64,000 nucleotides of DNA from IMGVR_UViG_3300032293_002041:62001-126000; one strand, 5' to 3'; shown: positions 32,984-58,100, counted from the first letter of the stretch. Numbers and translations are program-made. Notes: generated by a model from the sequence alone, not told the origin.

Positions 32984-33400
32984 ATGTCTGATCAATATTT
33001 ATCAAATTATTCTAACGGTAAAACTGTATCCGCAGCACAATTTATAACAGAAATTATTTGCGAAAGGAAAGCCCAGTCTACCAAGCAAGATTTACATTAT
33101 AGATTTTGGCTAGAAAAAAAATGGTCTGCTTTCTATAGGAACCAAATAGGATCAGCACATAAGTTGCTTAAAAAATACTCTTCTAAAGCTATCATAAGAG
33201 CATTGAATACTGATCAAGGAAGAAAAATCTATTCTTTGCGAGCACCACATCTTCCAGCTATTATAGAGAGTCAAGAACAAATTATCCAACAAGAAAATAC
33301 AGATCTTACTCTTCATATAGAGAGAAAAGAAAACATTTCTTTTGGTATTAAAAATCAATCAAAGAATATTATTTCTAAACTGAAGGACTTAGATCAATGA
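32984..33400 (+). CDS. Hypothetical protein
   Basis: ORF coupled to recA by an ATGA overlap. Confidence 0.6.
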   Translation: MSDQYLSNYSNGKTVSAAQFITEIICERKAQSTKQDLHYRFWLEKKWSAFYRNQIGSAHKLLKKYSSKAIIRALNTDQGRKIYSLRAPHLPAIIESQEQIIQQENTDLTLHIERKENISFGIKNQSKNIISKLKDLDQ

Positions 33401-35445
33401 GTTTAAAAGAAGATGTTATTAAGGATTTTGGTAATGAAATTATGCTAACAGCCAGCGCTGTTGTAGATAAAAAATTAATTACCATTCCAGTGAGTCCATC
33501 ATTAGACATTATATTGAATGGTGGTGTACCAGAAGGAAGCTTTATGATTTTAACTGGTCAACCAAAATGCGGCAAAGAGATGCCATTAAATAGCTTAATA
33601 TATACTCCCGATGGACCAAGAACAATGGGAGAAATGAAGGTTGGAACAGTAGTCTGTACTCCGGATGGTAATACTGCAAAAGTTATTGGAGTATATCCAC
33701 AGGGAAAGAAGGATATTTATAAGGTCACATTTAATGATGGTTCTTCAGCAGAGTGTGGATTAGAACACAACTGGACTGTTGCCAAAAATAATCGCAAAAG
33801 TGACTATGTAACGATAACCCTAGAAGAGATTATGAGCGAGGGGCTGAGATATAATGATCGTTGGAAGTGGAAGATTCCGTTAACAAAACCAGTTTACTTT
33901 AAACAGCAGAAGAAACTTATTCTTGATCCATATATTTTGGGTTGCTTGATTGGTGATGGTGGACTAACACAAAAGACCCCTAGATTCACAACTTCTGATA
34001 CCTTTATAGCAAGCAAGTTTAGAACTTTCTGTAAAAAAAGAGGACTATCTTTTAGGCATATTGATAAGTACGATTATTCTATTAGTGGTAATGTAGAGTC
34101 AAGTGTTATGGTAAAGAATACTCTAACCAGAGATCTGAAGAAACTAGGATTAATGGGTTGCGGGTCTCATGCCAAATTTATACCAACCGCATATAAGTAT
34201 GCTTCTGTGGCCAATAGACTATCTTTGGTTCGTGGACTAATGGATACCGATGGATATAATAGCAAAGGTAAAAGGGCAGAATATTCAACGGTATCACCAA
34301 GATTAGCTTCTGATGTTAGAGAACTTTTAGAGGGGTTGGGTTACTCTGTTGTGTCAACATTAAGAAATACTAACTGTAATAATAAGAGTTTTCTTTCATA
34401 TAGACTCTGTATTCATGGTAATGACATTAATCAACTATTCAGTTTACCTAGGAAAAAGACCAAGCACAAAAGAATCAAACCTGACTTGTGTAGGACTATT
34501 ATTGATGTGCAAAAGGTTTCTCGCGAAGAAGCCCAGTGCATAGAGATAGACCATAAGGATGGACTTTATTTAACTGATCGTTTTATTGTTACTCATAATA
34601 CCACAACATCTCTAGATTTCGCAGCAACCGCACAAAGACCAGAATATGCTTATAAAGAACTCAAAGAAGGAAGAGAGGTCTATTATCTCAATATTGAGGG
34701 TAGACTTAAGAAACGAGACCTAGAAGGCATCCCAGGACTTAATCTAGATAGATTTCACATCATTGGCTCTCAACAAGGCAAGATATTACATGCGGAAGAA
34801 TATCTCCAGATCGGAGAAAGAATCATAAATGAAATACCGGGATGCGTTCTAATTATAGACTCCTACTCTGCATTATGCACGGAAACAGAAATCACATCAG
34901 ATATGAGTAAAATGCAAAGAGCAGACGGAGCTAAGTTATTAGCTAAATTTTGTAGGAAAGTGGCTAATGTTATTCCTGTAAATAGGAATATCGTGGTAGG
35001 CATTACTCATCTTATGGGGAACCCTGGCACTGGTCATGTTGAATGGAAAGAAAAGAGTGGTCAAGCTATTGCTTATCAAACTGATATCAAGCTCAGAGCA
35101 CAATTCCACAGAGCATGGAAAATTGGAACATCAGAAGATGGTCAGCAGATTGGCCAGGAAATACAGTGGCAAGTTATTTGCTCTGCGTTGGGCGCTCCCG
35201 GCGGCACAATTACCAGCTACATTAGATATGGTCAGGGTATTGACAAGCAGATGGAACTATTAATGCTGGCAGCAGATATTGGATTGATACAAAAGGGTGG
35301 AGCTTGGTATACATTAACTTCAGTAGAAGATAAGCCTAAATTCCAAGGAACTGAAAAAGTCAGACAATATCTGGTTGACCATCCAGACGTTTATGAGAGC
35401 TTATTAGCACAAGTTAAAGAGACTATGGGCATTAAATGCAAATAA
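33397..35445 (+). CDS. recA: RecA/UvsX-like recombinase containing an intein
   Basis: SLDIILNGGVPEG, Walker A GQPKCGK|TTT interrupted by the intein, IIDS, IQKGGAWY. Confidence 0.88.
   Translation: MSLKEDVIKDFGNEIMLTASAVVDKKLITIPVSPSLDIILNGGVPEGSFMILTGQPKCGKEMPLNSLIYTPDGPRTMGEMKVGTVVCTPDGNTAKVIGVYPQGKKDIYKVTFNDGSSAECGLEHNWTVAKNNRKSDYVTITLEEIMSEGLRYNDRWKWKIPLTKPVYFKQQKKLILDPYILGCLIGDGGLTQKTPRFTTSDTFIASKFRTFCKKRGLSFRHIDKYDYSISGNVESSVMVKNTLTRDLKKLGLMGCGSHAKFIPTAYKYASVANRLSLVRGLMDTDGYNSKGKRAEYSTVSPRLASDVRELLEGLGYSVVSTLRNTNCNNKSFLSYRLCIHGNDINQLFSLPRKKTKHKRIKPDLCRTIIDVQKVSREEAQCIEIDHKDGLYLTDRFIVTHNTTTSLDFAATAQRPEYAYKELKEGREVYYLNIEGRLKKRDLEGIPGLNLDRFHIIGSQQGKILHAEEYLQIGERIINEIPGCVLIIDSYSALCTETEITSDMSKMQRADGAKLLAKFCRKVANVIPVNRNIVVGITHLMGNPGTGHVEWKEKSGQAIAYQTDIKLRAQFHRAWKIGTSEDGQQIGQEIQWQVICSALGAPGGTITSYIRYGQGIDKQMELLMLAADIGLIQKGGAWYTLTSVEDKPKFQGTEKVRQYLVDHPDVYESLLAQVKETMGIKCK
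33577..34599 (+). mobile_element. Class-3 intein with LAGLIDADG homing endonuclease (341 aa)
   Basis: Starts EMPLNSLIYTPDG and ends FIVTHN before +1 Thr. Block B EHNW, block F QCIEID, block G VTHN (W-C-T triplet). LGCLIGDG and RGLMDTDG motifs. Confidence 0.88.
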
Positions 35446-36734: not shown

Positions 36735-38189
36735 ATGATTTTGTGTGATTCAGCAGCAGAAAGAGCTGTTCTTTCCGGTATATGTAATTATGGAGAGGAT
36801 GCTTACTTGGATGTGGCAGATATTGTACAGGATTCTTCTTTTACAATTGACAGCAATTCTATTATTTTTAAGTGCTTAAAAGTTGTCTGCGAAAGAGAAC
36901 AAAAGCCCGATATTGACATAGCTACCATTTTTTCTGTAGCAGAAGAATTGGGATTTGGTCATATTTTAGCAAAAAAAGAAGAAGCCCAGCATTTAAGAGC
37001 AATTATTGATTTTCCTGTTGCTGTAGATAATGTAAGAAAATTTGCAGCTAAAATTAGAAAGCTTGAAATAGCTAGACTATTACGCAAGCAGCTTGAGTTA
37101 GCACAAGAGAAGATATTAGACGTTAATGGAACAGAACCGATAGGTTCGATTCTAGGTATAGCCGAAGAGACCATATTCAATTTTACGTCTCTTCTTAACG
37201 ACTCAGACAACAACCCCGTACCAATTGGCAACGATCTAGATGCATATATACATAATCTAGAACATAATAGGGTTGATCAGGTTGGTATACCCACAGGTTT
37301 TCCTGCTTATGATCATGCAATAGGTGGCGGTCTAAGAAAAGGAACCGTGAATGTTATCGGGGCTAGACCTAAAACTGGCAAAACATTACTATCAGATAAT
37401 ATAGGCAATAATATAGCTAAACTAGGGATTCCAGTTCTTAATATGGATACTGAGATGAATAAAGAAGACCATATCAATAGAATATTAGCTATGATGACAG
37501 AAATTGAAATCAATGCTATAGAGACTGGTAAGTTCGCAGAATCTCCAGATAAAAAGAATAAGCTAATAGCAGCAGCTACAGAACTGAAAAAGACCAAACT
37601 ATTTCATAAAAGTATTGCTGGTCAACCGTTTGAAGATCAGCTTGCAATCATGAGAAGGTGGGTACTAAAAGAAGTTGGTCTTAATGACGATGGCACAGCT
37701 AAGGAATGTGTTATTTTTTATGACTATCTTAAACTAATGGATAGTGCTGGCATGAGTCAGGATCTTAAAGAATATCAGGTATTAGGATTCATGATGACTT
37801 CTTTGCATAATTTTGCTACCAGATATAAGGTGCCTATCGTTGCATTCATACAGTTGAACAGAGATGGCATCACAAAAGAAAGTACAGATTCTGCCAGCGG
37901 ATCTGACCGTATTATATGGCTATGTAGCAACTTTAGTATTTTCAAACGAAAAACTCCAGAAGAGATAGCAGAAGATGGACCAGATAATGGTAATCGTAAA
38001 TTGGTCCCATTAATCAGTAGACACGGAGGAGGTTTGGATGACAATGATTATATTAATTGTCATATGAAGGGTTGGTGTGCGAAAATCACAGAAGGCAAGA
38101 CCAGACTTGAGGTACTTAACAATAAGGGTGGAACATCTGATGGCTTTATCGTCAACAATACAAATGAACAAGAAATCCCGTTCGAATAA
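36735..38189 (+). CDS. dnaB: Replicative DNA helicase
   Basis: AERAVLSG, GIPTGF, GARPKTGKT, DTEM, YDYLKLM, QLNR, SRHG. Confidence 0.92.
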   Translation: MILCDSAAERAVLSGICNYGEDAYLDVADIVQDSSFTIDSNSIIFKCLKVVCEREQKPDIDIATIFSVAEELGFGHILAKKEEAQHLRAIIDFPVAVDNVRKFAAKIRKLEIARLLRKQLELAQEKILDVNGTEPIGSILGIAEETIFNFTSLLNDSDNNPVPIGNDLDAYIHNLEHNRVDQVGIPTGFPAYDHAIGGGLRKGTVNVIGARPKTGKTLLSDNIGNNIAKLGIPVLNMDTEMNKEDHINRILAMMTEIEINAIETGKFAESPDKKNKLIAAATELKKTKLFHKSIAGQPFEDQLAIMRRWVLKEVGLNDDGTAKECVIFYDYLKLMDSAGMSQDLKEYQVLGFMMTSLHNFATRYKVPIVAFIQLNRDGITKESTDSASGSDRIIWLCSNFSIFKRKTPEEIAEDGPDNGNRKLVPLISRHGGGLDDNDYINCHMKGWCAKITEGKTRLEVLNNKGGTSDGFIVNNTNEQEIPFE

Positions 38190-39321
38190 TGATCAGACCA
38201 AACTTAAAATAGTTTGCGATGATATTTGTGACAACATATATCCTCTGCTTGATGCTTTTGGCTTGGAATATAGATCCAATAACAAAATGATTTCTATGTC
38301 TTGCCCAATTCATGGTGGAGACAATATGTCTGCCATTAATCTATATCCAGAAGGAGATAGATACAGAGGAAACTGGAAGTGCAGGACTCATGGGTGCGAA
38401 CAGATATTTAAGTCTTCTGTTATAGGGTTCGTTAGAGGAATACTCTCGCATCAAAAGCATGGATGGGAAGAAGATGGAGATAAAACATGTAGCTTCAATG
38501 ATGCCTTGGAGTTTTGTCTCAAATTTATCAATAAAGACCTAAAGAATATTAAAGTCTCGAAAACGGAAAGAGATAAAAAATCTTTTACCAGTACTGTTAG
38601 CTACTTATCCAGAGATGCTCAGGTATTGGATAAGACAGTTCAACTACCAACAAGAGACCAAGTAAGAAAAAATTTAAAAATGTCTCCAGACTATTATATT
38701 CAAAGGGGCTATTCTATAGAGATATTGGATAAGTACGATGTAGGCTTATGCGATAATGCCACTAAAGAAATGTATAATAGGATTGTGGTACCTATTTATA
38801 ATAATGATTATACTCATATGATTGCGTGTAGCGGAAGAAGCATATCTGATAAGTGTAGTCATTGTTCATCTTATCATAACGCAACTGAAAAATGCCCATC
38901 AGACGAAAAAAAGTGGCTTTATCCAAAATGGAAACACAGCGCTAATTTTAAAAGCCAAAATTCTTTGTACAATTTCTGGTTTGCGAAAGAGCACATTATG
39001 AAAAGCAATCAAGTAATTATTGTTGAGAGCCCCGGTAATGTTTGGAGACTAGAAGAAAACGGCATCCATAACAGTGTGGCTATATTCGGATCGTCTTTGA
39101 GCGATAGACAAAAAATTCTACTTGATTCGTCTGGAGCTATGACTATCGTAATCTTAACAGATAATGATGAAGCTGGCAGAAAAGCGGCTGAACAAATTAA
39201 GTCAAAGTGTCAAAATACCTATCGAGTTTTTATTCCATCAATCAGTAAGCCCGATGTGGGAGAGATGACATCAGAAGAAATTAATACTGAAATAAAACCA
39301 TATCTAGAAAGTATAGTATGA
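38164..39321 (+). CDS. dnaG: DNA primase (CHC2 zinc finger + TOPRIM)
   Basis: CPIHGGDN...WKCRTHGC, RIVVPI, SGR, IVESPGN, DNDEAG. Confidence 0.85.
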   Translation: MNKKSRSNNDQTKLKIVCDDICDNIYPLLDAFGLEYRSNNKMISMSCPIHGGDNMSAINLYPEGDRYRGNWKCRTHGCEQIFKSSVIGFVRGILSHQKHGWEEDGDKTCSFNDALEFCLKFINKDLKNIKVSKTERDKKSFTSTVSYLSRDAQVLDKTVQLPTRDQVRKNLKMSPDYYIQRGYSIEILDKYDVGLCDNATKEMYNRIVVPIYNNDYTHMIACSGRSISDKCSHCSSYHNATEKCPSDEKKWLYPKWKHSANFKSQNSLYNFWFAKEHIMKSNQVIIVESPGNVWRLEENGIHNSVAIFGSSLSDRQKILLDSSGAMTIVILTDNDEAGRKAAEQIKSKCQNTYRVFIPSISKPDVGEMTSEEINTEIKPYLESIV

Positions 39322-39908
39322 GTACAATTATTGCATTTGCTGGAAGAAAGCAGTCTGGAAAAACTACTTGTTCTGAAAATATTTGTGATTACTATAATAC
39401 TAAACATTCTGGTTTATCTAAGGTATATAACTTTGCTGATCCTTTAAAACAGGATATATGCATGAATATACTTGGATTGACTCATGATCAATGCTATGGG
39501 TCAGATATTGATAAGAATACTACAACTCATATAGAGTGGGATGAACAGAAGCTTACTGCAAGAGAAGTTATGCAAATAGTTGGTACTGATATTTTTCGAA
39601 AAATGTATAATGGTGTTTGGGTAAATGCCACAATCTCTAAAATTAATCGAGAACATATGGGTTTGGCTGTTATTGCTGACTGTAGATTTCCAAATGAAGT
39701 AGAAGCAGTTAAGAGTGCTGGAGGGATAGTTATTAAGTTAACTAGAAATCTATATAACTCAAATCATGCAAGCGAAATTGCTCTTGATCCAGAAAACTAT
39801 AGTCCAGATAATTTTGATCTAGTTGTACACAATGAGAAGATTGGTATTCAAGAACAAAACGATCTAATTGTATCATTTTTACAAAAAAGAGGGGTGTTCT
39901 CATTATAA
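39318..39908 (+). CDS. Deoxynucleoside monophosphate kinase (T4 gp1-like)
   Basis: AGRKQSGKTT, FADPLK, REVMQIVGTD, DCRFPNE, HASE. Confidence 0.85.
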   Translation: MSTIIAFAGRKQSGKTTCSENICDYYNTKHSGLSKVYNFADPLKQDICMNILGLTHDQCYGSDIDKNTTTHIEWDEQKLTAREVMQIVGTDIFRKMYNGVWVNATISKINREHMGLAVIADCRFPNEVEAVKSAGGIVIKLTRNLYNSNHASEIALDPENYSPDNFDLVVHNEKIGIQEQNDLIVSFLQKRGVFSL

Positions 39909-40945
39909 TAACATATCTAAGAAGTAGTTCTTATGGCACTCACTCAATGTGTCCACAGCAATATTTTTTTGAATATATTCTTGGCTTAAGATCTCCGTCT
40001 AATAAAAAAGCTGACAAGGGGACTGTGGTGCATAAAGTTCTAGAGATATTGGCATATGTCAAACTTAATCAACAAAATAAAATAAATATTTTTGAAGACG
40101 ATGTTGTTGGTTCTGTGAATATTAATAATTACAGCTTAAATACGATCATAGAAAAAGTATATAAATACTATACCTCAAGATTCACCCACCACGAATGGGA
40201 CATAAAGGATTATAAAGATTGTCACGGATGGGTTTACAAAGCCCTAGAATACAATGGTGGCATGTTTGACCCTAGGAATAGGGACATAGTGCAGCCAGAG
40301 CAGCATTTTGACATAGAGATTAAAAAACCATGGTCTTCTTATAAATACGATACTAAAGATGGATTACTAGAAGGTAATTTAGCTATCAAGGGCACAATAG
40401 ATCTTATCACCAGGATTAATGATAAAACCTTAGAAGTAATAGACTGGAAGACTGGAAGAAGACTAGATTGGGCGACAGGAGAAGAAAAAACCCAAGAAAA
40501 GCTACAAAATGATCCTCAACTAAGAATATATCATTATGCTATACAACATTTATATCCAGAAATTGAGCATGTTATGATCTCTATTGATTTTATTAATGAC
40601 GGTGGGGCATTTACTATTTGTTTTGACAAAAGCGATCTTTTCAAAACAGAAATCATGCTTAAGAATAAATTTGAAACTATTAAGAATACACAAAAACCTC
40701 AACTTAATAAAACCTGGAAATGTACTAAGCTATGTCATTTTGGGAAAACAACATTTGAGAATACTTCCATAGCTCCAATAATAGAATACAGAGATAATCA
40801 GATAACACCAAAAGATAAGTGTATGACTAAGTGCGAGCAAGTAAAGCATGATATAGACACCAAAGGCACAGAAGTCGTGATTGACGAATATCAAACTCCG
40901 GGTTATAGTATTGGACACTACAAGGCACCCGGAAGCACCGCATGA
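39902..40945 (+). CDS. PD-(D/E)XK (Cas4/RecB-like) exonuclease, probable non-canonical start
   Basis: YLRSSSY...CP, GTVVHKVLE, KGTIDL, IDWKTG, QLRIY, C-terminal Cys cluster. The conserved N-terminal motif lies upstream of the first ATG (39947). Confidence 0.8.
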   Translation: MIITYLRSSSYGTHSMCPQQYFFEYILGLRSPSNKKADKGTVVHKVLEILAYVKLNQQNKINIFEDDVVGSVNINNYSLNTIIEKVYKYYTSRFTHHEWDIKDYKDCHGWVYKALEYNGGMFDPRNRDIVQPEQHFDIEIKKPWSSYKYDTKDGLLEGNLAIKGTIDLITRINDKTLEVIDWKTGRRLDWATGEEKTQEKLQNDPQLRIYHYAIQHLYPEIEHVMISIDFINDGGAFTICFDKSDLFKTEIMLKNKFETIKNTQKPQLNKTWKCTKLCHFGKTTFENTSIAPIIEYRDNQITPKDKCMTKCEQVKHDIDTKGTEVVIDEYQTPGYSIGHYKAPGSTA

Positions 40946-42816
40946 AAAATTATACTCCGCTCCATTGTCATTCGATGTATAGCTTATTGGATGGATTGTC
41001 TCAGCCAAAAACAATGGCCGAAAGATGTCAAGAAATTGGAGCATCTTCTTGCGCTCTAACAGATCATGGTAACATAGCCGGAACTGTTAAGTTTTATACT
41101 GAAATGAAAAAGCATGGTATCAAACCCATATTGGGTTGCGAGCTATATATTTGCAACGATAATCCATCAATACAAAGCAAAGAGAATAAAGATCTTAGTC
41201 ATTTTGTAATATTGGCAAAAAACTTTGAAGGATGGAAAAGCTTAATCAGAATAACTTCAGAGTCTAATAGGCCAGACTTCTATTATCACAAGCCGAGACT
41301 CAGCCTATCAACCCTAGCGCAGTTCTGCAACAACAATATTATTGGTTTTTGCGGACATGCTGGTTCAACTATAGCTGACAAGATTATGCTAGGAGAAAGT
41401 CTAAATCCAGATTGGAAAGAAATTGGCATTCAACAAATCGGCCTATATAGAGAGATATTTGGTAGAGACAATTTTTTTCTTGAAGCCCAATTAATGGATT
41501 CAGAAAACTCACCAATTCAGAAGATATTGACCGATGCGATGAGAGAGCTTGCAAAGCATACCTCTACCAAGATTATAGCCACACCAGACGCTCATTATTG
41601 CCGCAAGGAGGACGCAATTGATCAAAGAGTACTGCTGTGCAATAATTTAAAAACAACCTTCCCAGAGATCAGCAGGAAGATCACGAATGATGAGGAAGTT
41701 CCTCTTGGCTGCTTTTTTACATCTGACAACTTTCACATATTATCTCAGGAAGAAATACGATTATTTCACACAGAGGAAGAAATCGAGAACACCAATTTTG
41801 TGGCTAATTTATGTGAAGAATATAATATTTTGGATAAGCCACAATTACCACCATTTCCATGTCCAAACAATCTGGACGATGCTGAGTATCTGAGAGAATT
41901 ATGTAGAAACGGATGGAGAGAGAAAATTGCCAATGATATCCCAAAAGAAGACCATGGTAAGTATGTTGATAGGATTAAATATGAGCTTGATGTTTTACAG
42001 GGAGCTGGGCTATCAAGCTACTTTTTGATTGTGCAAGATATTGTGAATTATGTTAGGTCTAATAATTGGCTCCCAGGACCAGGAAGAGGAAGTGCTGCTG
42101 GTTGCTTAGTCTCTTATTTAATCGGTATTACTAGTATAGACCCGATTAAGTATAATCTTCTTTTCGATAGATTTTACAATGCTGGTCGTAATAGTAAAGA
42201 CCATATCTCAATGCCAGACATTGATGTGGACGTACCAATTAATAAAAGAGAAAATGTTATCGAATATATTAAACAGTGCTACGGAAAAGACAAGGTGTCT
42301 CAAATGATAACATTCAATACGATTAAAGGTAGAGGAGCTATCAAGGATGTCTTAAGAGTATATGGTAATATATCTTTTGATGAGATGAATAAAATTACTA
42401 AAAGTATTCCAGATGAGTCCAAAATTGCCGACGATCTTCAAGAAATGAAAGAAGAAACCGGAGAAGCATCAATTATTAGATGGGCTTTAGAAAATCAGCC
42501 AGATAAGCTTAGGGAGTGGTGTTTTATCGATGAAAAGAACGAATTACAAGGACCACTTGCAAAAAGATTTGAGCAGGCTATAAGATTGGAAGGCACCAAG
42601 TCTAATCAGTCCAAACATGCCGCTGGTATAGCCATTAGTGCCAATCCATTAAATATATCATGCCCAATGGTTTATGATTCAAAAAACGAACAGATGATAG
42701 CTGGCATGGAAATGCAAGATTTAGAATCGTTAGGTATAATTAAGTTTGATATTTTAGGTGTAGCGATGTTAGATAAAATTATGACTATTCGAGACATTTT
42801 AAGAACAGGAGAATAA
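40942..42816 (+). CDS. dnaE: DNA polymerase III alpha, N-terminal part (PHP + palm/thumb)
   Basis: LHCHSMYSLLDG, LTDHG, GPGRGSAAGCLV, MPDIDVD, KHAAG, KFDILG; the ORF stops shortly after. Confidence 0.92.
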   Translation: MKNYTPLHCHSMYSLLDGLSQPKTMAERCQEIGASSCALTDHGNIAGTVKFYTEMKKHGIKPILGCELYICNDNPSIQSKENKDLSHFVILAKNFEGWKSLIRITSESNRPDFYYHKPRLSLSTLAQFCNNNIIGFCGHAGSTIADKIMLGESLNPDWKEIGIQQIGLYREIFGRDNFFLEAQLMDSENSPIQKILTDAMRELAKHTSTKIIATPDAHYCRKEDAIDQRVLLCNNLKTTFPEISRKITNDEEVPLGCFFTSDNFHILSQEEIRLFHTEEEIENTNFVANLCEEYNILDKPQLPPFPCPNNLDDAEYLRELCRNGWREKIANDIPKEDHGKYVDRIKYELDVLQGAGLSSYFLIVQDIVNYVRSNNWLPGPGRGSAAGCLVSYLIGITSIDPIKYNLLFDRFYNAGRNSKDHISMPDIDVDVPINKRENVIEYIKQCYGKDKVSQMITFNTIKGRGAIKDVLRVYGNISFDEMNKITKSIPDESKIADDLQEMKEETGEASIIRWALENQPDKLREWCFIDEKNELQGPLAKRFEQAIRLEGTKSNQSKHAAGIAISANPLNISCPMVYDSKNEQMIAGMEMQDLESLGIIKFDILGVAMLDKIMTIRDILRTGE

Positions 42817-42818
42817 AT

Positions 42819-43016
42819 ATGGCAATTAAAAAATTTATGGAAGTTACTGTTGGTCAGACATTTAAGCTAAAAAACGAACAGGGTGCTGTAAATGATTATG
42901 TAAAACTTACAGAAGAAAGAATAAGTTGTTGTAAGGTTATAAATGCAGCATTACTAGCAGATCAAAATCAGCGGATTCAAGTTTTACCCTTAATAGAAGT
43001 AGAAGTAAACGACTAA
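42819..43016 (+). CDS. Small hypothetical protein
   Basis: AGGAG SD; 65 aa; lies between the dnaE halves. Confidence 0.6.
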   Translation: MAIKKFMEVTVGQTFKLKNEQGAVNDYVKLTEERISCCKVINAALLADQNQRIQVLPLIEVEVND

Positions 43017-43020
43017 ACTA

Positions 43021-43719
43021 ATGATTAACTATAATAAAATTTGCGTTTTCGATTTTGAGACAGATGGTTCTGATCCTCGTGTTTGTAGTCCAGTGCAAAT
43101 AGCATCTGTCATTATTGATCCAATTAAGCTTGAATTAGTTCCAAATTCTGAATTTAATATTTTCTTTAAACCAGATGTATTAGCTAAAGATGAAAATTAT
43201 GAATATACAACAGATATTCTGGACTTTCATGCCAAAGTCAAGGGATGTTCCAAGGACGATATTCTAAAAGAATGGAAAGCTTATCCTTCACAAGAACAAT
43301 CTTGGAAAATGTTTACAAATTATTTAGAAATGTATCATAGTAGGTCTTCTAAAAAGAGTCAATTTAGTGCTCCTATAGCTGCCGGTTATAATATTAATCG
43401 CTTTGACCTACCGATAGTAGATAGACTCAGTAATAAATATGGCAACGTCAACAAGGAATCAAAGAGTGATATCTTTTATCCTAGGGATGTGGTCGATATC
43501 ATGAATCTGATTTTCTATTGGTTTGAAAATAATGGTGACTTAAAAAGTTATAGTCTAGATTCATTAAGAGACTACTTTGGAATCTCTAAAGCAGGAGCAC
43601 ACGACGCATTGAAGGATGTGAAGGACTGTGCCGATATTTTAATTAGATTTCTTAGATTACATCGTAATTTAAGCAATAAGATCAAATTCAAGGACTCTTT
43701 CTCTACTAGCAATGTCTAA
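43021..43719 (+). CDS. DEDDh 3'-5' exonuclease (DnaQ/epsilon-like)
   Basis: FDFETDG, GYNINRFD, AHDALKD. Confidence 0.85.
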   Translation: MINYNKICVFDFETDGSDPRVCSPVQIASVIIDPIKLELVPNSEFNIFFKPDVLAKDENYEYTTDILDFHAKVKGCSKDDILKEWKAYPSQEQSWKMFTNYLEMYHSRSSKKSQFSAPIAAGYNINRFDLPIVDRLSNKYGNVNKESKSDIFYPRDVVDIMNLIFYWFENNGDLKSYSLDSLRDYFGISKAGAHDALKDVKDCADILIRFLRLHRNLSNKIKFKDSFSTSNV

Positions 43720-45340
43720 AAAATTTCAATATTCTTGCGGTTGTTCTTTTGATGTTCTTCCAGACTCTACGGATGAGCATATACATATCAACTTTGATCC
43801 AACGATAGAGCACATTCATTTGGATTGTTCTAAAACTTGGCAGTTGATTTCCGATGGAAATACCAAAGGGTGTTTTCAGCTGGAGTCTAGGTTAGGTAAA
43901 TCAATGGCTAAAAAGTTAAAGCCAGAAAATATAGAGCAGTTATCTGCGTTAATAGCCATTTTGAGGCCTGGGTGCTTGGAGGCAATGAGAGAAGGGAAAA
44001 GCGTTAGCAATCATTATATTGATAAAAAAAATGGTAAGGAGTCTGTAGACTACTATCATCCTGTACTAGAGGAGTCCTTAAAGAATACTTATGGAGAGAT
44101 GATTTATCAAGAGCAAGCTATGGAAATAGCTAGAACTGTTGCCGGTTTCGATCTTCAAGAAGCGGACATGTTAAGAAAAGCTATCGGCAAGAAGAAGCCT
44201 GAAGAAATGGCAAAAATTAAAGTTAAATTCATTAAAGGATGCGAAAAGGTAGGCACGGTATCAGTTGATCAGGCAGAAGAAATATTCGGATGGATCGAAA
44301 AATCTCAAAGATACTCATTCAATAAGTCCCACTCTGTATCATATGCAATAAATGCATACTTATCGGCATTTGCAAAAGCACATTTTCCCAAGATATTTTT
44401 CGCCTCATACCTAAGATTTGCGAAAGATAAGATTGATCCAAAAGCAGAGATTAAAGAGTTAGTACAAAACGCTAGCGAAATGGATGTTTCAGTATCAATA
44501 CCAGATATCAGAAATCTTAATAAACTATTTGTACTAAAGAATGAAAAAATCTATTTTGGTTTAACTGATATTAAAGGCTTTGGACAATCAGTATTTGATA
44601 AACTAATCAATATCAAAAATACTAAGCACTTGGATTTCGAAACGATGAATTGGATAGAAATGTTATTGCAAGTATTAATGAACATAAACTCCATATCTGC
44701 AAAAGCATTGATACAGAGTGGGTCTTTGTCTTATTTAAATAAAAGTAGGGCATGTATGTTATTTGAATTTAATCTAGCTTCTGAACTAACTAAGAAAGAG
44801 GCTGAATTCATACTCATTAATATACAGAAATATAAGTCTTTAGGTGATGGCTTATATGATCTATACCATAATGGTAAATCAAACAAGAATAGAAAATCAA
44901 TAATATTAGGATTAATCAATAACTATAATAAGCCACCCCACTCTTTGGAAGATAATCCAGAATGGATTTCCGACACAGAGGATGAGATACTGGGATGCAG
45001 CATCACCTGTTCTAAAGTAGATATGTATGATATTACTATGACGAACACAACATGTAAAGATTTCAAAACATCATTAATGAGCGATAACCTTATCTTGTGC
45101 GGTGAGATCGATAATCTTAGTGTTACTAAGACTAAGACAGGCAAAAATCCTGGACTAGAAATGTCTTTTGTTACATTGAGCGATGGGACTGGAGTTCTGG
45201 ACTCTGTTATTTTCTTTCCAGAAGCATACAAGGCTTATAGAAATATTTTATTCCAAGGCAATGTTATCATAGTTAAGGGTAGCAGATCAAAGAACGGCGA
45301 TTCGTTTATCGTAGAAAAAACTTATATTCCAAAGACTTGA
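43712..45340 (+). CDS. dnaE: DNA polymerase III alpha, C-terminal part (fingers, HhH, OB)
   Basis: TKGCFQLES, LRPG, TYGEMIYQEQ, ADMLRKAIGKK, YSFNKSH, GLTDIKGFG, MSFVTLSDGTG. Confidence 0.92.
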   Translation: MSKKFQYSCGCSFDVLPDSTDEHIHINFDPTIEHIHLDCSKTWQLISDGNTKGCFQLESRLGKSMAKKLKPENIEQLSALIAILRPGCLEAMREGKSVSNHYIDKKNGKESVDYYHPVLEESLKNTYGEMIYQEQAMEIARTVAGFDLQEADMLRKAIGKKKPEEMAKIKVKFIKGCEKVGTVSVDQAEEIFGWIEKSQRYSFNKSHSVSYAINAYLSAFAKAHFPKIFFASYLRFAKDKIDPKAEIKELVQNASEMDVSVSIPDIRNLNKLFVLKNEKIYFGLTDIKGFGQSVFDKLINIKNTKHLDFETMNWIEMLLQVLMNINSISAKALIQSGSLSYLNKSRACMLFEFNLASELTKKEAEFILINIQKYKSLGDGLYDLYHNGKSNKNRKSIILGLINNYNKPPHSLEDNPEWISDTEDEILGCSITCSKVDMYDITMTNTTCKDFKTSLMSDNLILCGEIDNLSVTKTKTGKNPGLEMSFVTLSDGTGVLDSVIFFPEAYKAYRNILFQGNVIIVKGSRSKNGDSFIVEKTYIPKT

Positions 45341-45364
45341 CGCTCGTCGCGTCATTGCTATAAT
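45337..45364 (+). promoter_or_regulatory. Strong sigma70-type promoter upstream of ssb
   Basis: TTGACG, 16 nt spacer, TATAAT with extended -10 TG; contains the inverted repeat TGACGC-N5-GCGTCA. Confidence 0.7.
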
Positions 45365-45401
45365 AGTTCAGTACATTGGTCTTTTTTTCAAGGAGAAGTT
45401 A

Positions 45402-45773
45402 ATGAATATTAACATTTTACGCGGTAATTTAGCTAGGGATCCGGAAGTTCGTGTTGTCAATACAGCAGGTAAGCAAACATCAGTAGTTAATTTTACTGTT
45501 GCTGTATCTCGTGAATATACCAAGGCCAACGGAGAAAAGGATAAGGTAACAACCTTTGTTCCTTGTGAGGCTTGGGATAGTGGAGCTGAAATTATTGGTC
45601 AGTCTTTTAAAAAGGGTGATCTAGTTTTGGTAGAGGGTTCGCTAAGGAATGATTCTTGGGAGAAGGATGGAGTAAAACATAACTCTCTAAAGGTTCGTGT
45701 GAATAATTTTTCTAAGATTACTAAGCTTTCAAAAAAGAGCAAGGAATCAACTGAGGAAGTCGTTAGCTTTTAA
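45402..45773 (+). CDS. ssb: Single-stranded DNA-binding protein
   Basis: GNLARDPE, NFTVAV, CEAW, KGDLVLVEGSL; short acidic tail ending in F; AAGGAG SD. Confidence 0.92.
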   Translation: MNINILRGNLARDPEVRVVNTAGKQTSVVNFTVAVSREYTKANGEKDKVTTFVPCEAWDSGAEIIGQSFKKGDLVLVEGSLRNDSWEKDGVKHNSLKVRVNNFSKITKLSKKSKESTEEVVSF

Positions 45774-45804
45774 TCTTATTATCAACCACTAGTCATTTCC
45801 GGGA

Positions 45805-45830
45805 GATGGGGGTGAAATATCCCCCGTTTT
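45805..45830 (+). terminator. Intrinsic terminator after ssb
   Basis: GATGGGGG-TGAAATAT-CCCCCGTTTT hairpin plus T tract. Confidence 0.65.
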
Positions 45831-45834
45831 CATT

Positions 45835-47502
45835 ATGTCATCAAAAAAATTAAAAATTCTCATGTGTTCTGAAGCTAGTTTTTTAAGCTCGGGCTTTGGC
45901 ACCTATGCTAAAGAAATACTTAAAAGACTTCACGCTACTGGAAAATATGAAATAGCTGAATTTGCTTCTTATGGAAAAGTCAACGATCCAAAAGACGTTG
46001 GTATAACATGGAAATATTATGCTAATGCTGTGGACGATAAAGATCCTAGACATAGAGAATATAATAGTTCAGCAGAGAATCAATTTGGTAGATGGAGATT
46101 TGAGCGGGTTCTTTTAGATTTTCAGCCAGACATAGTGTTTGACGTTAGAGACTATTGGATGAATTCTTATCAACAATTTTCTCCATTAAGGCCTTTCTAT
46201 CATTGGATCTTGATGCCGACAGTAGATTCCGCACCACAACAAGAGGAATGGATTGATACGTTTCTTCATGCTGATGCTATATTTACATATTCTGATTTTG
46301 GTAGAGATACAGTATTACAACAAAGTAATAATAAGATCAAATATATAAATACTACTTCTCCAGGTGTAGATTTACAAACATTTAATTTGATTGGAGATAA
46401 AAAATCAATTAAACAAGCTTTTGGACTAAAAGATGATTCATTTATTATTGGATCTATCATGAGAAATCAAAAACGTAAGCTTATGCCTGAGTTGTTTGTT
46501 TCTCTAAAAAAGCTTTTAGAAAAGTTTGAGCAAGAGGATGATCCAAGAGGGAAGAATACCTACTTGTATCTTCACACGAGTTATCCCGATGCCGGTTGGG
46601 ATATGCCGCAATTACTCAAAGAATATAAAGTTGGTAACAGGGTTCTGTTTACCTACAGCTGCAAGAATTGTTCGTACTTTGCTCCATGCCTATACCAGCA
46701 TCCTGTTAGTTTTTGCCCAAGATGTGGCCAAAAAGCTTTCTCTATGCCGAACGTTAGCTCTGGTGTAACTTCGCAAGTTTTATCGACTATTATTAATTCT
46801 TTTGATATATATGTTCAGTATGCTATTTGTGAAGGTTTTGGTATGCCTCAAGTAGAAGCCGGAGCATGTGGTGTCCCTGTTGCATCAGTTGATTATAGTG
46901 CAATGAACGATGTGGTCAGAAAGTTAAATGGCTATCCAATTAAGATTGGTCAATATTTTAAAGAACTAGAGACCAAGGCTATTAGGGTATATCCCGATAA
47001 CGAACATTTAGTTCAAATATTATATGATTTTAGCAAATTGCCAGAGTTTTTATTGGAACAAAAACGATTTGAGACAAGAAAACTAACTGAACAATATTAT
47101 AACTGGGATCATATAGCTAATAAATGGGAAGAGTATTTTGATTCTGTAAAGTTAACAGGTCTGCAAGGCAAATGGCAAGAAAATCTATTAACACTAAATA
47201 CCATAAAAGAATTACCACAAGGTAATAGTCCATATGATATTTTAACAAATGTAGTGTCTAAGCATTTACCAAATCATCAAATAGCTTCGTCTATAATTCT
47301 ATTGAATATGATTAAAGATTTGGATTATGGTTTTACTATTAATGGGATGCATACAGAACCATATAATATATCTAAAGCTATTGATGTTCTTAATAATATC
47401 ATATCTAATAATAATCTAGCCCAAAATGCAAAGAATGATTTCAAACAACTAAGAAATGAAGATTTCATAGAATATGCTAATATGAAAGAAAAACTACAAT
47501 GA
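45835..47502 (+). CDS. Glycosyltransferase GT4-like with inserted zinc ribbon
   Basis: SGFG, PGVD, RNQKRK, CKNC...CPRCG, EGFGMPQVEAGACG. Confidence 0.85.
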   Translation: MSSKKLKILMCSEASFLSSGFGTYAKEILKRLHATGKYEIAEFASYGKVNDPKDVGITWKYYANAVDDKDPRHREYNSSAENQFGRWRFERVLLDFQPDIVFDVRDYWMNSYQQFSPLRPFYHWILMPTVDSAPQQEEWIDTFLHADAIFTYSDFGRDTVLQQSNNKIKYINTTSPGVDLQTFNLIGDKKSIKQAFGLKDDSFIIGSIMRNQKRKLMPELFVSLKKLLEKFEQEDDPRGKNTYLYLHTSYPDAGWDMPQLLKEYKVGNRVLFTYSCKNCSYFAPCLYQHPVSFCPRCGQKAFSMPNVSSGVTSQVLSTIINSFDIYVQYAICEGFGMPQVEAGACGVPVASVDYSAMNDVVRKLNGYPIKIGQYFKELETKAIRVYPDNEHLVQILYDFSKLPEFLLEQKRFETRKLTEQYYNWDHIANKWEEYFDSVKLTGLQGKWQENLLTLNTIKELPQGNSPYDILTNVVSKHLPNHQIASSIILLNMIKDLDYGFTINGMHTEPYNISKAIDVLNNIISNNNLAQNAKNDFKQLRNEDFIEYANMKEKLQ

Positions 47503-54669: not shown

Positions 54670-55135
54670 GTCCCCACTTATCAGCCGGACACTTTTGATC
54701 TTTGTGCGCCAATTTATTTTGATGATTTGCTTCTCTAATAACAGTACATCCGCACAATAAACAAGAACTATTTTGAAAATATTCACAAGAATTACATACG
54801 CTTAGTCTTTGTTCTATTTGTTCAGCAGAGCAGAGGTTATCTGGATTGTCATTATTTTGAGCTTTTAAGTATTGCTGTTTTGTATTGTCTGCAATTTTAT
54901 TTAGGATAACATCAGACATATTCTGATTCTCTGAAAGATGTTCTACTGAAGATTCTTGTCCTCTATGAACCTGTTGAATCTTATTAGTAATATCTTCCAT
55001 TTTTTTAAAGCATAAAATTTTGGTATCCGGTATTTCAAGACCAACGGTTAAGCCACAATAATTACATTTATACAGTGGCTTATCGTTAAAGAATGTATTT
55101 AATGGCTGAAGATCACAGTAGCTGGAGTTATGCAT
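54659..55135 (-). CDS. Cys-rich zinc-binding hypothetical protein
   Basis: ATG 55135; CNYCG, RLSVCNSC...CLLCGC...CPADKW. Confidence 0.65.
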   Translation of the reverse strand: MHNSSYCDLQPLNTFFNDKPLYKCNYCGLTVGLEIPDTKILCFKKMEDITNKIQQVHRGQESSVEHLSENQNMSDVILNKIADNTKQQYLKAQNNDNPDNLCSAEQIEQRLSVCNSCEYFQNSSCLLCGCTVIREANHQNKLAHKDQKCPADKWGPIV

Positions 55136-58100
55136 ATTCCACCTTATTAGCTTGGCAACATCCTTTATCATCATTACATTTTGACGCTCCGGTATTATAG
55201 CATGATGGAGCAATATCGCAATCAGTAGTTTTATAAGTAGAAGATAGTCTAATATTAGAATTAATACATGATGTCGCTCTTTCATTACATTTGATAGAAG
55301 TATCTACGCCTTTTAAAATATCTTGAATAGTTTTAGGTCTTCTATATTTATATGTATAATACGCTACTCTAACAGGTAATTCAACGCTGACTAATGCTGG
55401 ATCACCTAAAGTAGCCCTATAGTTAATTGCTGGGTATGTTATAATACCAAAACTTAGTTTACTACAAGTGCCTGGAACCACACCTTCAACTATATCATTT
55501 ATTTCATACTTATCTTTATTATTCTTACAAACAGCTATATTATTATAAGCTTGTTCCATGTTGGCTTCCCATTCTTTATTTAACTCGCCATTAGCTCCGG
55601 CTGAACCTTGCTCAAACTGTACTTCAGTTTCACACCCGGCAATAGCATGTTCTATATTTCCTCCTACAACAATTGCTGAAGCTTTGGAAATACAAGTATG
55701 CCATGGAAAAGAATCCGGTGCTGATTTTCCACATTGTCCTATTCCACATGTTGTTACAGTAAAACCATTACAGGCATTAGGATCTGGCAGCGTTCCACAA
55801 AATTGTTTAGCTACTGTTTGACATCCTCCGATTGGTGTCGGCCCATCTTGATTCGGATTTCCTTGTACTAAATACCCTAACACACATGTTCTAGTTTCTG
55901 TTATGATATCCCATGACGGATGCTGATTTATCATAGCTGCTTGATTAGGCTCAACCCCGCAGTCAGAACACTCGCTATTAATAGAATCAACTACACTAAA
56001 GCTATCATCTGGAACTGTTATCGTTATAGAAGGACAATCAGATCTTATTGAATTAGGAATACATTTTGATACTCCACCAGCTAAAGAAATTGTAAGATTA
56101 TTATTATCATAAGATATATTGCATAGTTGTGTAGAACATGAGGGTGAATATCTATTATATTGAATAGTTGTATTTTTATTATAAATATAGTAAGTTTCTG
56201 GATTAGAAATCTGACAAGACATCCAACCACACTGTTCTGTTATAGTTAGTTTATTTGAGGTTGTGGGACTCGCTCTCAAAGCAATATCGGATCGTGGAGG
56301 TATCGGATCTGTAATTATATTTGGATTAGACAAATAACCTACAAGTTTTCTCTTGTAGCCTTTTAATGTAATAGAATGTCTACAATATTCAAAGGTATAA
56401 TCAAAATCGGTATATTCATAATTTAATGATTTACAAGCACAGTCATTAATTTTGTCAGAACTTCTACAATACCCATATTCATAATTAGAACATTCACATG
56501 CGTCCGAAGTGCTGGTTGGAGATGGTGGCCAATCTCTATTTGCTAGATTATTAAATCGTTTTTTGTCTTCATCATCTAATAAAGTAAAACATGTCCCGCA
56601 AGTAGAAGATTCGTATCTGGGATTTAGTGGGAAAGTACCCACATCGGGTATTGTAGTAGATCTAATCATACTTTCTATGGGTCCACCATTTCTGAATGTT
56701 AAGTCATTATTGGGATTTGTAGACCCACCACGATTAACGCATCCCCTAAAGACTCCTCTAGCATAACCAGGAGAACTAACATCTATAGTAACTATTTTAG
56801 ACGATAATACTGTGCAGTTAGAAGCAATCGGATCAATTGGACCAACACCTCTGTTAGTACATTCTAGATAAGGGAAACTATTGGTATTAGCACAAGCATC
56901 ATGGTCCACAAAATAAATACTGGGTATATTTTGATCTCCTGGTGGAACGTTTGGATCAGTTGAACATATCGGTTTATAATATGGTGCTCCAAAGTTACAT
57001 TTTTTACCTTTAGGGTTATTTGAATCTGCCCAAAAAGGAAAACTAAAAGTTTCTATTTCGTTGGAACATCCAATAGTTTCGATCTCTGCTCTTATAATTT
57101 TATTAATTAAATTGAATGCTTTTTGTGGTCGCTCTTTGCATCTTCCTATTTCATTATATGTTTCCAGATTATTAGCTGGAGATAGTGGTTGTGTAGATAC
57201 TACTAAACTAGTATTTGTAATAGATTCTGAGTATATTATTGACTCTAAATCACTATGATTAGATATTGTCGCTATTGCCTTGATTTTGCCATCAGTCCTT
57301 ACGATTTTAATAGTAATTGATAAATTATTAATAGATATATCGACAACTTTACCTACTGCTAAAATACCATTAATGTTTATTGAGCCATTAATTTTTCTAT
57401 TTGAGGTATCAGCACTTATATCTAAGTCATATGGAATATTTTTGTATACATCTTTAGCTTCAATTTTAGGATAGGAATATCTTAAAAAATCTATAAGAGT
57501 TAATGGTTTTTCTGAATTATCAATTCTTTGTAGATTAATTTTCTGTTGTTCACCATATAAAAGCCTAAATAACATTTCATTAGCTAAAATATCAGTATTA
57601 TTGACAATACTAGTATGATCAGAAACTATGCTATTCGATAATAAAGATTGATATTCAGGATTTAATATGGAATATTTTTCTGTTGCTGGCCTTGGCCCAA
57701 CAGATGGATCACAATTTGACTCTGGATACAAAATATTGTTCGGCTGTAATTCAAATCTTTGAATATATTTAATGCCAGTATTACCAATAATATTATATAG
57801 TCCAGCATCATAAGATAACATGAAAGGAATATTATCCGGAATATTTTCGATATTTTTTTCTTTTTCTTTATTGATAGCATATTCTGCTTTTAATGTTGTC
57901 CAACCAACAGTATTAATGCCACACCTAAAACTACCACATCCGCTAACAGCATCTGTATCACAATATACTGGATATCTAGCAAAAATATCTCCAGTGAATG
58001 ATATAGTATTGAAGGAGTTAAAATCAAAAACATCTGTAAATGTAGTATTATTATAAGTTGGTACAGAAGCCCTAAATGTATTCCTGCACATTGATGTGTC

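Follow-up and report, generated by a model that had tools for sequence, protein, structure and literature searches.

DnaE-type polymerases characteristically have all their domains in a single chain, and the locus studied here raises the question of how a DnaE-type polymerase can work when its gene comes in two pieces. The locus lies in a window (the whole 64,000-nt stretch of DNA that was analysed, IMGVR_UViG_3300032293_002041:62001-126000) in which an N-half and a C-half of DnaE are separated by two other genes. We considered whether the halves are (i) rejoined into one chain, (ii) decaying, (iii) an artefact, (iv) proteins with separate jobs, or (v) separately translated subunits of a non-covalent two-subunit DnaE-type (C-family) replicase. 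We favor the last reading, with a probability of roughly 0.8.

Layout of the locus and domains of the halves

ORF calling in 40942-45340 gave four tightly packed genes on the + strand. The features of the region are as follows.

36735-38189, + strand: DnaB-like helicase, upstream replication gene
38077-39321, + strand: ORF of a DnaG-like primase, upstream; true start uncertain
39318-39908, + strand: dNMP kinase, upstream replication gene
39947-40945, + strand: PD-(D/E)XK exonuclease, upstream replication gene
40942-42816, + strand: DnaE N-half, 624 aa; PHP, palm, thumb
42807-42812, + strand: Shine-Dalgarno-like AGGAGA, read directly from the sequence
42819-43016, + strand: SH3-like protein, 65 aa
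43021-43719, + strand: DEDDh 3'-5' exonuclease, 232 aa; RNase_T (Pfam)
43712-45340, + strand: DnaE C-half, 542 aa; fingers, HhH, OB
43712-43783, + strand: N-terminal leader of the C-half, ~24 residues, M..F.Y.CGC.F...
45337-45364: promoter-like site ahead of SSB, the best in the region
45402-45773, + strand: SSB, directly downstream of the C-half
45808-45824, + strand: terminator-like hairpin after SSB, the only one on the + strand of the region

The preliminary description had placed a 65-aa ORF and a DEDDh exonuclease between the halves, all tightly coupled, and the spacing agrees. The N-half stop codon (42814-42816) is followed after 2 nt by the 65-aa ORF, which is followed after 4 nt by the exonuclease gene; the exonuclease stop and the C-half start share an 8-nt overlap, ATGTCTAA. 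The AGGAGA at 42807-42812 lies within the final N-half codons, 7 nt ahead of the ATG of the 65-aa ORF, and is, judged by its sequence, a translational-coupling signal. No + strand terminator was found within 40942-45340, and the four genes would be translated from one message through coupling. They sit within a complete replication module (helicase, primase, SSB, RNR, dNMP kinase), and the upstream order of helicase, primase, dNMP kinase and PD-(D/E)XK exonuclease recurs in two distant relatives (L083 and L095).

The N-half had been described as a 624-aa protein with a PHP domain and all three catalytic aspartates, which Pfam matches and invariant residues bear out. PHP (PF02811) matches residues 7-183 (E = 1.7e-34) and DNA_pol3_alpha (PF07733) residues 315-606 (E = 2e-73). 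The catalytic aspartates of the palm, D426 and D428 (PDIDVD) and D603 (KFD), are invariant in relatives. The PHP ligand positions are present (H8, H10, D17, H42, E67, H87, C137/H139, D216, and H218), and most are invariant among relatives. The N-half aligns to E. coli alpha 6-564 and to Taq alpha as far as residue 634. It ends in a short tail (...LDKIMTIRDILRTGE) right after the last palm helix, at a point conserved in relatives; 21 residues follow KFD, rather than the 23 first counted.

The C-half begins M-S-K-K-F-Q-Y... and contains DNA_pol3_finger (PF17657) at residues 26-179, HHH_6 (PF14579) at 259-347, and OB (PF01336) at 463-528. Its residues 32-353 align to E. coli alpha 586-902, and 421-526 to 951-1055. 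In agreement with the first reading of a 542-aa protein that resumes at GCFQLES after a CGC-containing leader, GCFQLES occupies residues 53-59 and CGC residues 9-11. Residues C9, G10, C11, F13, and C39 are invariant across relatives, and the leader (~24 residues) is absent in relatives with a contiguous or fused DnaE. The protein ends with the OB fold, apparently without a tau-binding C-terminal domain: no alignment to E. coli alpha 1076-1160 was obtained, and inspection of the C-half by eye gave no convincing clamp-binding motif of the QL(S/D)LF type. Almost all of the top 120 C-half relatives are 537-548 aa long, the exceptions being one of 519 aa and one of 803 aa with an intein domain.

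Conservation of the break point

Both profiles that we used place the halves side by side without overlap. Along phrog_405 (1190 positions), the N-half covers 42-614 and the C-half 616-1071; along TIGR00594, they cover 1-572 and 581-1022. The break corresponds to the palm/fingers border (E. coli alpha ~565-585), with no residues lost. Conservation of this point in related phages had been proposed as a check, and it is extensive: the stop and restart points are identical in ~60 related IMG/VR loci from many metagenomes (44-100% identity), and 140 of the 150 nearest 50%-identity cluster representatives (37-69% identity) are split at the same point.

These data bear on whether the split is an assembly artefact, a chimera or a sequencing frameshift. 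The window does derive from a metagenome assembly, and one relative (L070) has a probable frameshift error within its N-half. However, the four-gene order and the stop and start positions repeat in dozens of independent contigs (metagenome projects; Logan, ENA, and NCBI assemblies), and halves that lie ~900 nt apart with two conserved genes between them are not the product of a single indel. We give this explanation almost no credence.

A second possibility is that dnaE is decaying or non-functional and that the phage replicates with a host polymerase. The complete 229-kb genome, which has direct terminal repeats, encodes one palm domain and one finger domain; no PolA, PolB, or any second DNA polymerase was found in it. 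Nor were genes for a beta clamp or clamp loader found in the genome; the phage thus probably relies to some extent on replication proteins of the host, which is the one point in favor of decay. Against it, all four genes are under purifying selection, with dN/dS of ~0.06 for the N-half and ~0.11 for the C-half (both estimated at saturated dS), ~0.09 for the exonuclease, and ~0.27 for the 65-aa protein. The catalytic aspartates, PHP ligands, and finger motifs are invariant in relatives to at least ~59% identity; both halves remain ORFs ending at the split down to ~40% identity; the break point stays constant while its flanks evolve; and the genes are embedded in the complete replication module. 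Decay is thus very improbable. There is strong support for a split that is natural, ancient, and intein-free, and a very large group of uncultured aquatic phages has it in common.

Possible rejoining at the junction

Split DnaE proteins can be made whole. In cyanobacteria, intein halves ligate the two products into one chain (Wu et al. 1998 and Caspi et al. 2003, as cited in PMC2677866), and the C-family alpha subunit there likewise comes from two genes. That cut, however, lies inside the fingers, at about C-half residue 201-203 (NCBIfam NF007079, NF005616), and the phage cut at the palm/fingers border is ~200 residues earlier. The cyanobacterial halves are at separate loci with intein parts, whereas the phage halves are in one operon and intein-free. 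Closer in setting are the "fractured genes" of environmental phage-like loci, three of them DnaE, in which a split intein accompanies a free-standing homing endonuclease (Dassa et al. 2009, PMC2677866). There too an essential replication gene from aquatic metagenomes is interrupted by another gene, and three relatives of this phage (L078, L079, and L080) have exactly this layout, with split inteins and homing endonucleases at two other DnaE sites. In contrast, the palm/fingers cut has no intein halves, and the gap in the window holds a DEDDh exonuclease and an SH3-like protein instead of a homing endonuclease.

We therefore weighed whether RNA splicing, protein trans-splicing or ribosomal bypass of 0.9 kb rejoins the halves into one alpha chain. 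The cyanobacterial precedent and the split inteins of phage relatives speak for it, as does a short element toward the 5' end of the N-half in some relatives that is a candidate for bypass. Against it, a Pfam search of either half gave no match to Hint/intein families, although the same search detected the intein pieces of relatives (Intein_splicing/Hint matches in L020, which has a full intein, L078, and L080) and an intein was also recognized in the phage's own RecA; the claim that neither junction has split-intein motifs is thereby upheld. What DnaE homology leaves unexplained at the junction, ~4 residues in the N-half and ~21-24 in the C-half, is too short to be an intein of any kind. Met is the first residue of the C-half, and a ...HN block followed by a Cys/Ser/Thr nucleophile was not found at its start. 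An Rfam scan of 40000-46000 for group I/II intron cores returned two chance-level matches only, and HNH, GIY-YIG, LAGLIDADG, and VSR domains had no match in the gap. The intervening DNA consists of two protein genes under purifying selection, and other lineages have unrelated genes there. No RNA run was listed as containing the window itself; more weakly, contigs from RNA libraries of relatives retain the N-half stop codon. Rejoining by any of these routes is very improbable.

The gap cargo differs among deeper lineages, in which unrelated genes of up to 4.5 kb occupy the gap; because of this variation, the halves must act as independent genes.

Proposed assembly of the halves, and the genes between them

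With the C-half as the only partner scored, the complex model of the two halves gave an ipSAE of 0.78 against 0.00 for the best control, a value to which the predictor's prior exposure to solved structures of single-chain Pol III alpha may have contributed. The calibration holds only roughly, because our own alignments were used; in it, 58 of 80 solved complexes and 2 of 110 mismatched pairs attained this mark. In the model, two stretches of the N-half (residues 377-415 and 608-624) make confident contacts with residues 16-33 and the fingers of the C-half. Residues at the interface are conserved, and the modelled docking is as in the native fold. The heterodimer proposed earlier is thus supported in silico, for chains that are pieces of a solved fold. 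From the model and the sequences, we infer physical assembly and polymerase activity of the halves.

In the two-subunit replicase that we favor, subunit 1 would comprise PHP, the palm with the three catalytic aspartates, and the thumb, and subunit 2 the fingers, HhH (the beta-binding region), and the OB fold, with the cut placed in the short palm/fingers linker. The large native palm-fingers interface would act as the glue, together with the C-terminal tail of the N-half packed against the ~24-residue leader of the C-half. This tail/leader contact would be analogous to the extension tails of other phage genes-in-pieces.

Alternatively, each half could do work of its own instead of forming one enzyme: the N-half might be a lone PHP nuclease or a minimal polymerase, say, and the C-half a factor that binds DNA or the clamp. 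Among deep relatives, some (L093) lack a C-half within 3.8 kb of the N-half, and group 2.2 jumbo phages encode a split "minimal" Pol III alpha module from distant genes (Iyer et al. 2021, PMC7824862). That module likewise divides the Pol III alpha catalytic module between two stand-alone proteins, with no intein reported. It differs, however, in being a stripped core without PHP, HhH, and OB that accompanies a family B replicase, and its cut separates the NTP-binding subdomain from the one that binds Mg and template; the phage studied here has a full-length DnaE with the cut at the border of the fingers, and no other polymerase in its genome. Established Pol III alpha structures (Lamers 2006, as cited in PMC7824862) indicate that a fingerless palm is unable to position an incoming dNTP. 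Both halves are kept in every sufficiently long relative examined, and the conserved interface with its confident native-like docking also argues against separate jobs, which we consider hardly probable.

The closest analogue in mechanism to a non-covalent replicase is the T4-type genes-in-pieces without inteins, such as topoisomerase 39/60 (interrupted by MobA) and Aeh1 nrdA (interrupted by MobE), whose pieces have gained extension tails at the C and N termini (Manning & Atkins preprint, 10.1101/2022.08.31.505936). In these, an essential enzyme is split by an insert, the pieces are thought to reassemble non-covalently, and the downstream piece has an N-terminal extension. The enzyme family is different, the DnaE gap lacks an endonuclease, and the DnaE split is no recent homing event but an old one found throughout a very large clade. 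A cultured phage, Rossellomorea phage phiT1 (PV767480.1), also has two CDS annotated "DNA polymerase III subunit alpha" (gp20/gp19/gp18; 573 + 469 aa). The break is at the corresponding palm/fingers position, and a 49-aa ORF lies in the gap. It is only ~34% identical, falls outside the clade of the present split genes in trees, and has neither an exonuclease between the halves nor the Cys leader; in the Bacillus phages nearest to it, the gene is contiguous. The phiT1 split is most likely an independent event. With the same break point in phiT1 and intein-less T4-type precedents, the initial framing of the case as unique needs softening: an intein-free split of a full-length DnaE is apparently an undescribed variant of the phage genes-in-pieces theme.

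The exonuclease matches PF00929 (RNase_T) and phrog_192, "DNA polymerase exonuclease subunit"; its motif residues, namely D11 and E13 of Exo I (DxE), D129 of Exo II (D), and H194 and D199 of Exo III (H-x4-D), do not vary among 35 sequences. The gene regularly accompanies dnaE in this lineage. Among unsplit relatives, it is immediately upstream of dnaE in one (L084) and 4 kb downstream in another (L083). Some deep lineages with a split gene do not have it in the gap. Given this varying cargo, the exonuclease is a frequent but not obligatory occupant. Judged by synteny, it is most likely the proofreading partner of the split polymerase, although, because the PHP domain keeps its metal ligands, it may not be the proofreader, or not the sole one; the PHP domain could proofread by itself.

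In the 65-aa protein, F15, C37, and C38 (an "SCC" motif) are invariant. Its AF2 model is an SH3-like five-stranded beta-barrel (pLDDT 94.6), for which a fold search returned generic Tudor/KOW/EF-P-like barrels only (Z <= 5.4). It matched no named family and has homologues in metagenomic viral contigs only. We rejected Pol III theta/HOT as its identity, since there was no family match and the model is all-beta; E. coli theta is a helical bundle. The E. coli Pol III core (alpha-epsilon-theta) likewise combines a polymerase, a DEDDh exonuclease, and a small third protein, a set of genes that lie side by side in the phage, but E. coli alpha is a single chain. It is possible, if doubtful, that the cut is a selected design and no mere scar, in which the C-half docks onto the N-half by its Cys leader and both form a four-subunit Pol III core with the exonuclease and the SH3-like protein. 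If so, this phage core would be without a cellular counterpart, assembly of the DNA-gripping module could be regulated or the module exchangeable, and the gap would be a protected landing pad for cargo genes.

Finally, in many relatives, though not in this window, the N-half is interrupted near its 5' end by an 8-11 nt insert that begins with a stop codon. The insert, a candidate element for translational bypass, is enclosed by a hairpin that shows conservation and covariation.

Gene block and position of the cut

C-family replicases are regarded as single-chain enzymes in which the fingers close on the palm. A preliminary description had proposed that the phage dnaE gene is naturally split in two without inteins, with an exonuclease gene in between. 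We recovered four open reading frames (ORFs) on the + strand, at exactly the positions where that description placed them:

40942-42816, + strand: DnaE N-half, 624-aa ORF
42819-43016, + strand: small ORF, 65 aa
43021-43719, + strand: exonuclease, 232-aa ORF
43712-45340, + strand: DnaE C-half, 542-aa ORF

As read from the sequence, the genes are packed as for coupled translation: an AGGAGA lies within the last codons of the N-half, the first two gaps are 2 nt and 4 nt, and the exonuclease and C-half overlap by 8 nt (ATGTCTAA). We found no terminator-like site on the + strand within the block.

Pfam assigns a PHP domain (residues 7-183) and the Pol III alpha palm (315-606) to the N-half; fingers (26-179), HhH (259-347), and OB (463-528) domains to the C-half; and RNase_T to the 232-aa ORF. 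The two halves fall on adjacent, non-overlapping parts of phrog_405 (positions 42-614 and 616-1071) and of TIGR00594 (1-572 and 581-1022). Against solved structures, the N-half aligns with residues 6-564 of E. coli alpha and up to residue 634 of Taq alpha, and the C-half begins at residues 586 and 646, respectively. These profile and structure alignments place the cut in the short linker between palm and fingers, with no part of the fold missing. The anatomy initially described thus stands for the ORFs and domains, except that the N-half ends 21 residues after the KFD motif, not 23.

The source is an IMG/VR virus record of 228,972 bp, of which the window spans bases 62001-126000; it carries direct terminal repeats and is estimated to be complete. 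The G+C content is ~33%. The block sits inside a replication module with genes for RNR, DnaB, primase, dNMP kinase, a PD-(D/E)XK nuclease, and SSB. The complete genome (G000) encodes a single palm domain and a single finger domain, and we detected no family A or B polymerase (PolA/PolB) in it. Nor did we detect a beta clamp or clamp loader gene, despite its own helicase, primase, SSB, and RNR. Because palm and finger domains are unique, family A and B polymerases are lacking, and the setting is a replication module, the split enzyme is the phage's replicase unless the host enzyme is used. A DNA-level similarity search of a phage collection returned nothing close, and the window contains no tRNA gene.

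Two other features were noted in the window. The helicase ORF (36735-38189, + strand) overlaps the longest primase ORF (38077-39321, + strand, GTG start) by 113 nt, and the true primase start is probably further downstream than the GTG at 38077. On the opposite strand, a very large ORF (55128-63278, - strand) encodes 2716 aa.

Conservation of the split and its evolutionary direction

We scanned IMG/VR with the N-half as query and obtained 79 related loci (44-100% identity) from many different metagenomes, about 60 of them long enough to reach a C-half. All ~60 have the order N-half, cargo, C-half on one strand. Nearly all share the window's two cargo genes, the small ORF and the exonuclease, with -14 to +5 nt between neighboring genes. 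The split point recurs as well: in every case the N-half ends no more than a few residues from ...LDKIMxIxxxLxxGE, and the C-half always restarts with M..F.Y.CGC.F, followed ~25 residues on by L.C..TW...GNTKG.FQLES. The relatives show no variation in the three catalytic Asp, the DEDDh residues, the finger motifs, or most of the PHP metal ligands. Relative to the window, dN/dS is 0.06 for the N-half, 0.27 for the small ORF, 0.09 for the exonuclease, and 0.11 for the C-half, with dS largely saturated.

The group is large. In an exhaustive search of 1.84 billion cluster representatives, 140 of the 150 best hits were N-half-only proteins ending at this cut (37-69% identity), and with the C-half as query a word-index search retrieved >3000 relatives, all but two of the top 120 being 537-548 aa long. 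We considered two other explanations: (i) misassembly, against which the same cut recurs across many metagenomes; and (ii) pseudogene decay, against which stand the low dN/dS and the invariant catalytic residues. The recurrent cut, purifying selection, and group size together exclude both for practical purposes. Thousands of metagenomic ORFs of ~620 and ~540 aa labeled 'DNA polymerase III alpha' are halves of one enzyme, neither fragments nor pseudogenes. A natural, ancient, and very widespread split between palm and fingers indicates that their covalent link is dispensable.

Loci with divergent content between the halves were as follows:

L041: 10740-14380, 3.6 kb of unrelated genes (DUF1559 prepilin-like, ThyX) between exonuclease and C-half
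L095 (39% identity): 57-aa helical ORF, 190-aa ORF, and VWA protein; exonuclease absent; C-half leader MKCNCK...
L092 (42% identity): UDG-like gene, 150-aa ORF, and exonuclease; C-half without the CxC leader
L093 (48% identity): C-half not present within 3.8 kb downstream

The cargo differs while the cut stays, which indicates that the halves are independent genes; the exonuclease is a frequent but not obligatory occupant of the gap. The DUF1559/N-terminal-methylation prepilin-like family found in the L041 cargo is typical of Planctomycetota and Verrucomicrobiota, a possible hint at the host of that phage.

Six of the 150 representatives carry both halves in a single ORF, joined by a short ordinary linker without the Cys leader. 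On one syntenic contig (L083), the unsplit gene is followed 4 kb downstream by the exonuclease homologue; at another locus (L084), the homologue directly precedes it. In maximum-likelihood trees the six fall inside the split clade, in two groups, which would mean re-fusion. An AU test did not reject a tree with all split forms as one clade (p = 0.26), so that either re-fusion or a single split with basal unsplit lineages may apply.

Inteins, introns, and comparison with known systems

We asked whether the halves could be rejoined after expression. The earlier statement that the junction lacks split-intein motifs holds: neither half matches a Hint or intein family in Pfam. The DnaE profiles leave uncovered just ~4 residues where the N-half ends and ~21-24 where the C-half begins, too few even for an atypical split intein. 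Nor did Rfam, scanned with permissive filters, show any intron near the halves. No RNA run containing the window was listed, nor was any for a search with the related locus L049. Four RNA libraries with relatives yielded only short, diverged contigs, colinear with the DNA and with the N-half stop codon kept, in which DNA carry-over is possible.

The negative results for inteins and introns carry weight because the same family provides positive controls. At one related locus (L020:10738-13089), the C-half contains, after ILRPG, a classical intein that includes an HNH endonuclease. In two others, L078 (8034-11094) and L080 (7637-10031), a split intein breaks the N-half at GPGRGS|AAG, and in L078 a free-standing homing-endonuclease-like ORF lies between the pieces. 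The C-half is fractured at FNK|SH, three residues from the cyanobacterial DnaE intein site, by a split intein and a LAGLIDADG ORF in L079 (10791-13767) and L080 (10879-13827), so that L080 has DnaE in four pieces. The arrangements in L078, L079, and L080 correspond to what Dassa et al. 2009 (PMC2677866) termed 'fractured genes'. In the window itself, the RecA/UvsX-like recombinase (33397-35445, + strand, 682 aa) contains an intein with a LAGLIDADG_3 endonuclease domain, and the PHROG matches of this ORF to intein-bearing terminases and primases reflect intein homology. The lineage is therefore rich in inteins, yet the cut between palm and fingers has none. DnaE offers a compact natural series of how mobile elements break essential genes and how such genes survive: the intein-less split, fractures by split inteins, a classical intein, inserted cargo, and perhaps re-fusion all occur in this one gene family.

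Known systems differ from this arrangement. In the cyanobacterial DnaE the cut lies ~200 residues later and a split intein rejoins the parts, and the fractured DnaE loci of Dassa et al. depend on inteins (PMC2677866), whereas the cut described here does not. Iyer et al. 2021 (PMC7824862) describe a split 'minimal Pol III', a stripped accessory module with another cut site and distant genes. T4 genes 39/60 and Aeh1 nrdA are also intein-less genes-in-pieces, but of other enzymes and made by homing endonucleases. Full-text literature searches brought up no account of a full-length DnaE that is divided at the fingers border without an intein; public annotation shows the arrangement uncommented, with the JGI label 'DNA polymerase-3 subunit alpha' on both halves.

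One cultured phage has an equivalent cut between palm and fingers. In Rossellomorea phage phiT1 (PV767480.1; L085:2489-5771), dnaE is divided into gp20 (573 aa) and gp18 (469 aa), with a 49-aa ORF, gp19, in between. Since dnaE is contiguous in its closest Bacillus-phage relatives, this split is apparently an independent event. phiT1 might offer a model in culture for a dnaE split without an intein. The dnaE genes annotated as multi-piece in Bacillus phages WH1, Jayan, and vB_BpsS-140 have other cut positions or a frameshift, and we set them aside as a different phenomenon.

Predicted complex and an insert in related N-halves

We modeled the multi-subunit replicase suggested in the preliminary description as four chains (N-half 300-624, small protein, exonuclease, and C-half 1-370), scoring the C-half as the only partner. 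In this model the halves dock with an ipSAE of 0.78 versus 0.00 for the best control. In the tool's calibration, 58 of 80 solved complexes and 2 of 110 mismatched pairs attained this mark; the calibration holds only roughly here, because we supplied our own alignments, and the score may partly reflect solved look-alike structures known to the model. The confident contacts link two parts of the N-half, residues 377-415 and the C-terminal tail (608-624), with the fingers and residues 16-33 of the C-half; in the model these are the native palm-fingers interface plus a tail-leader contact. From this we infer that the halves form a non-covalent heterodimer. The new C-half leader would then play the role of the extension tails on T4-type genes-in-pieces (Manning & Atkins preprint, 10.1101/2022.08.31.505936). 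The split DnaE is a ready-made system for studies of assembly and of the palm-fingers interface, and for split-polymerase design.

Judged by its residues, the exonuclease has a complete catalytic site and probably does the proofreading; as a counterpoint, the PHP domain also retains its metal ligands. The 65-aa protein is predicted to be an SH3-like barrel (pLDDT 94.6), and searches of Pfam, PHROGs, and a protein atlas, a profile search, and two fold searches gave no informative relatives, only 'hypothetical protein' and generic small-barrel matches. We also considered a cysteine or metal site shared by the C-half leader (CGC and C39) with the invariant SCC motif of the 65-aa protein or with N-half cysteines. 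It was not supported: the CxC leader is kept in L079 and L095, from lineages without the SCC protein; no N-half cysteine tracks the split versus fused state; and the complex model lists no confident contact of C-half residues 9-11.

An insert of 8, 9, 10, or 11 nt that begins with TAA or TAG breaks the N-half within its first PHP motif (PLHVHS|HYSLLDG) in 25 of the 79 related loci; the window lacks it (40957-41000). Examples of the insert and its hairpin are:

L049:4094-4140
L007:7982-8029
L028:7984-8029
L048:8000-8047
L050:3579-3627
L053:3858-3903

Deleting the insert restores the canonical PHP motif exactly, and the 12-15 codons upstream of it are conserved as protein. All three frame offsets occur, and for three of the six insert types no in-frame start codon lies nearby. 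Together with its flanks, the insert folds into a two-tier hairpin. The invariant outer stem pairs GUCCAUUC with GGAUGGAC, and synonymous changes in the Tyr-Ser-Leu codons are matched by covariation in the inner stem (UAGUGA/UCACUA versus UAACGA/UCGUUA; AGAGAAU/AUUCUCU). Folding energies are -14 to -21 kcal/mol (z-scores -3.8 to -6.4; none of 200 shuffles as stable), and uninterrupted alleles, including that of the window, have no such structure. The codon preceding the stop of the insert is always UCY, and its last three bases are NCU or UCA. These features are compatible with a short translational hop resembling the bypass of T4 gene 60, and we regard the insert as a candidate for programmed bypass over a short range, from a UCY-stop take-off site to an NCU/UCA landing site. 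It could alternatively be a scar that protects against a homing endonuclease. Separately, the N-half of one further locus (L070:3205-4933) is frameshifted at about residue 423 and contains neither an intein nor an inserted gene; the likely cause is an error of sequencing or assembly, or recent pseudogene formation.
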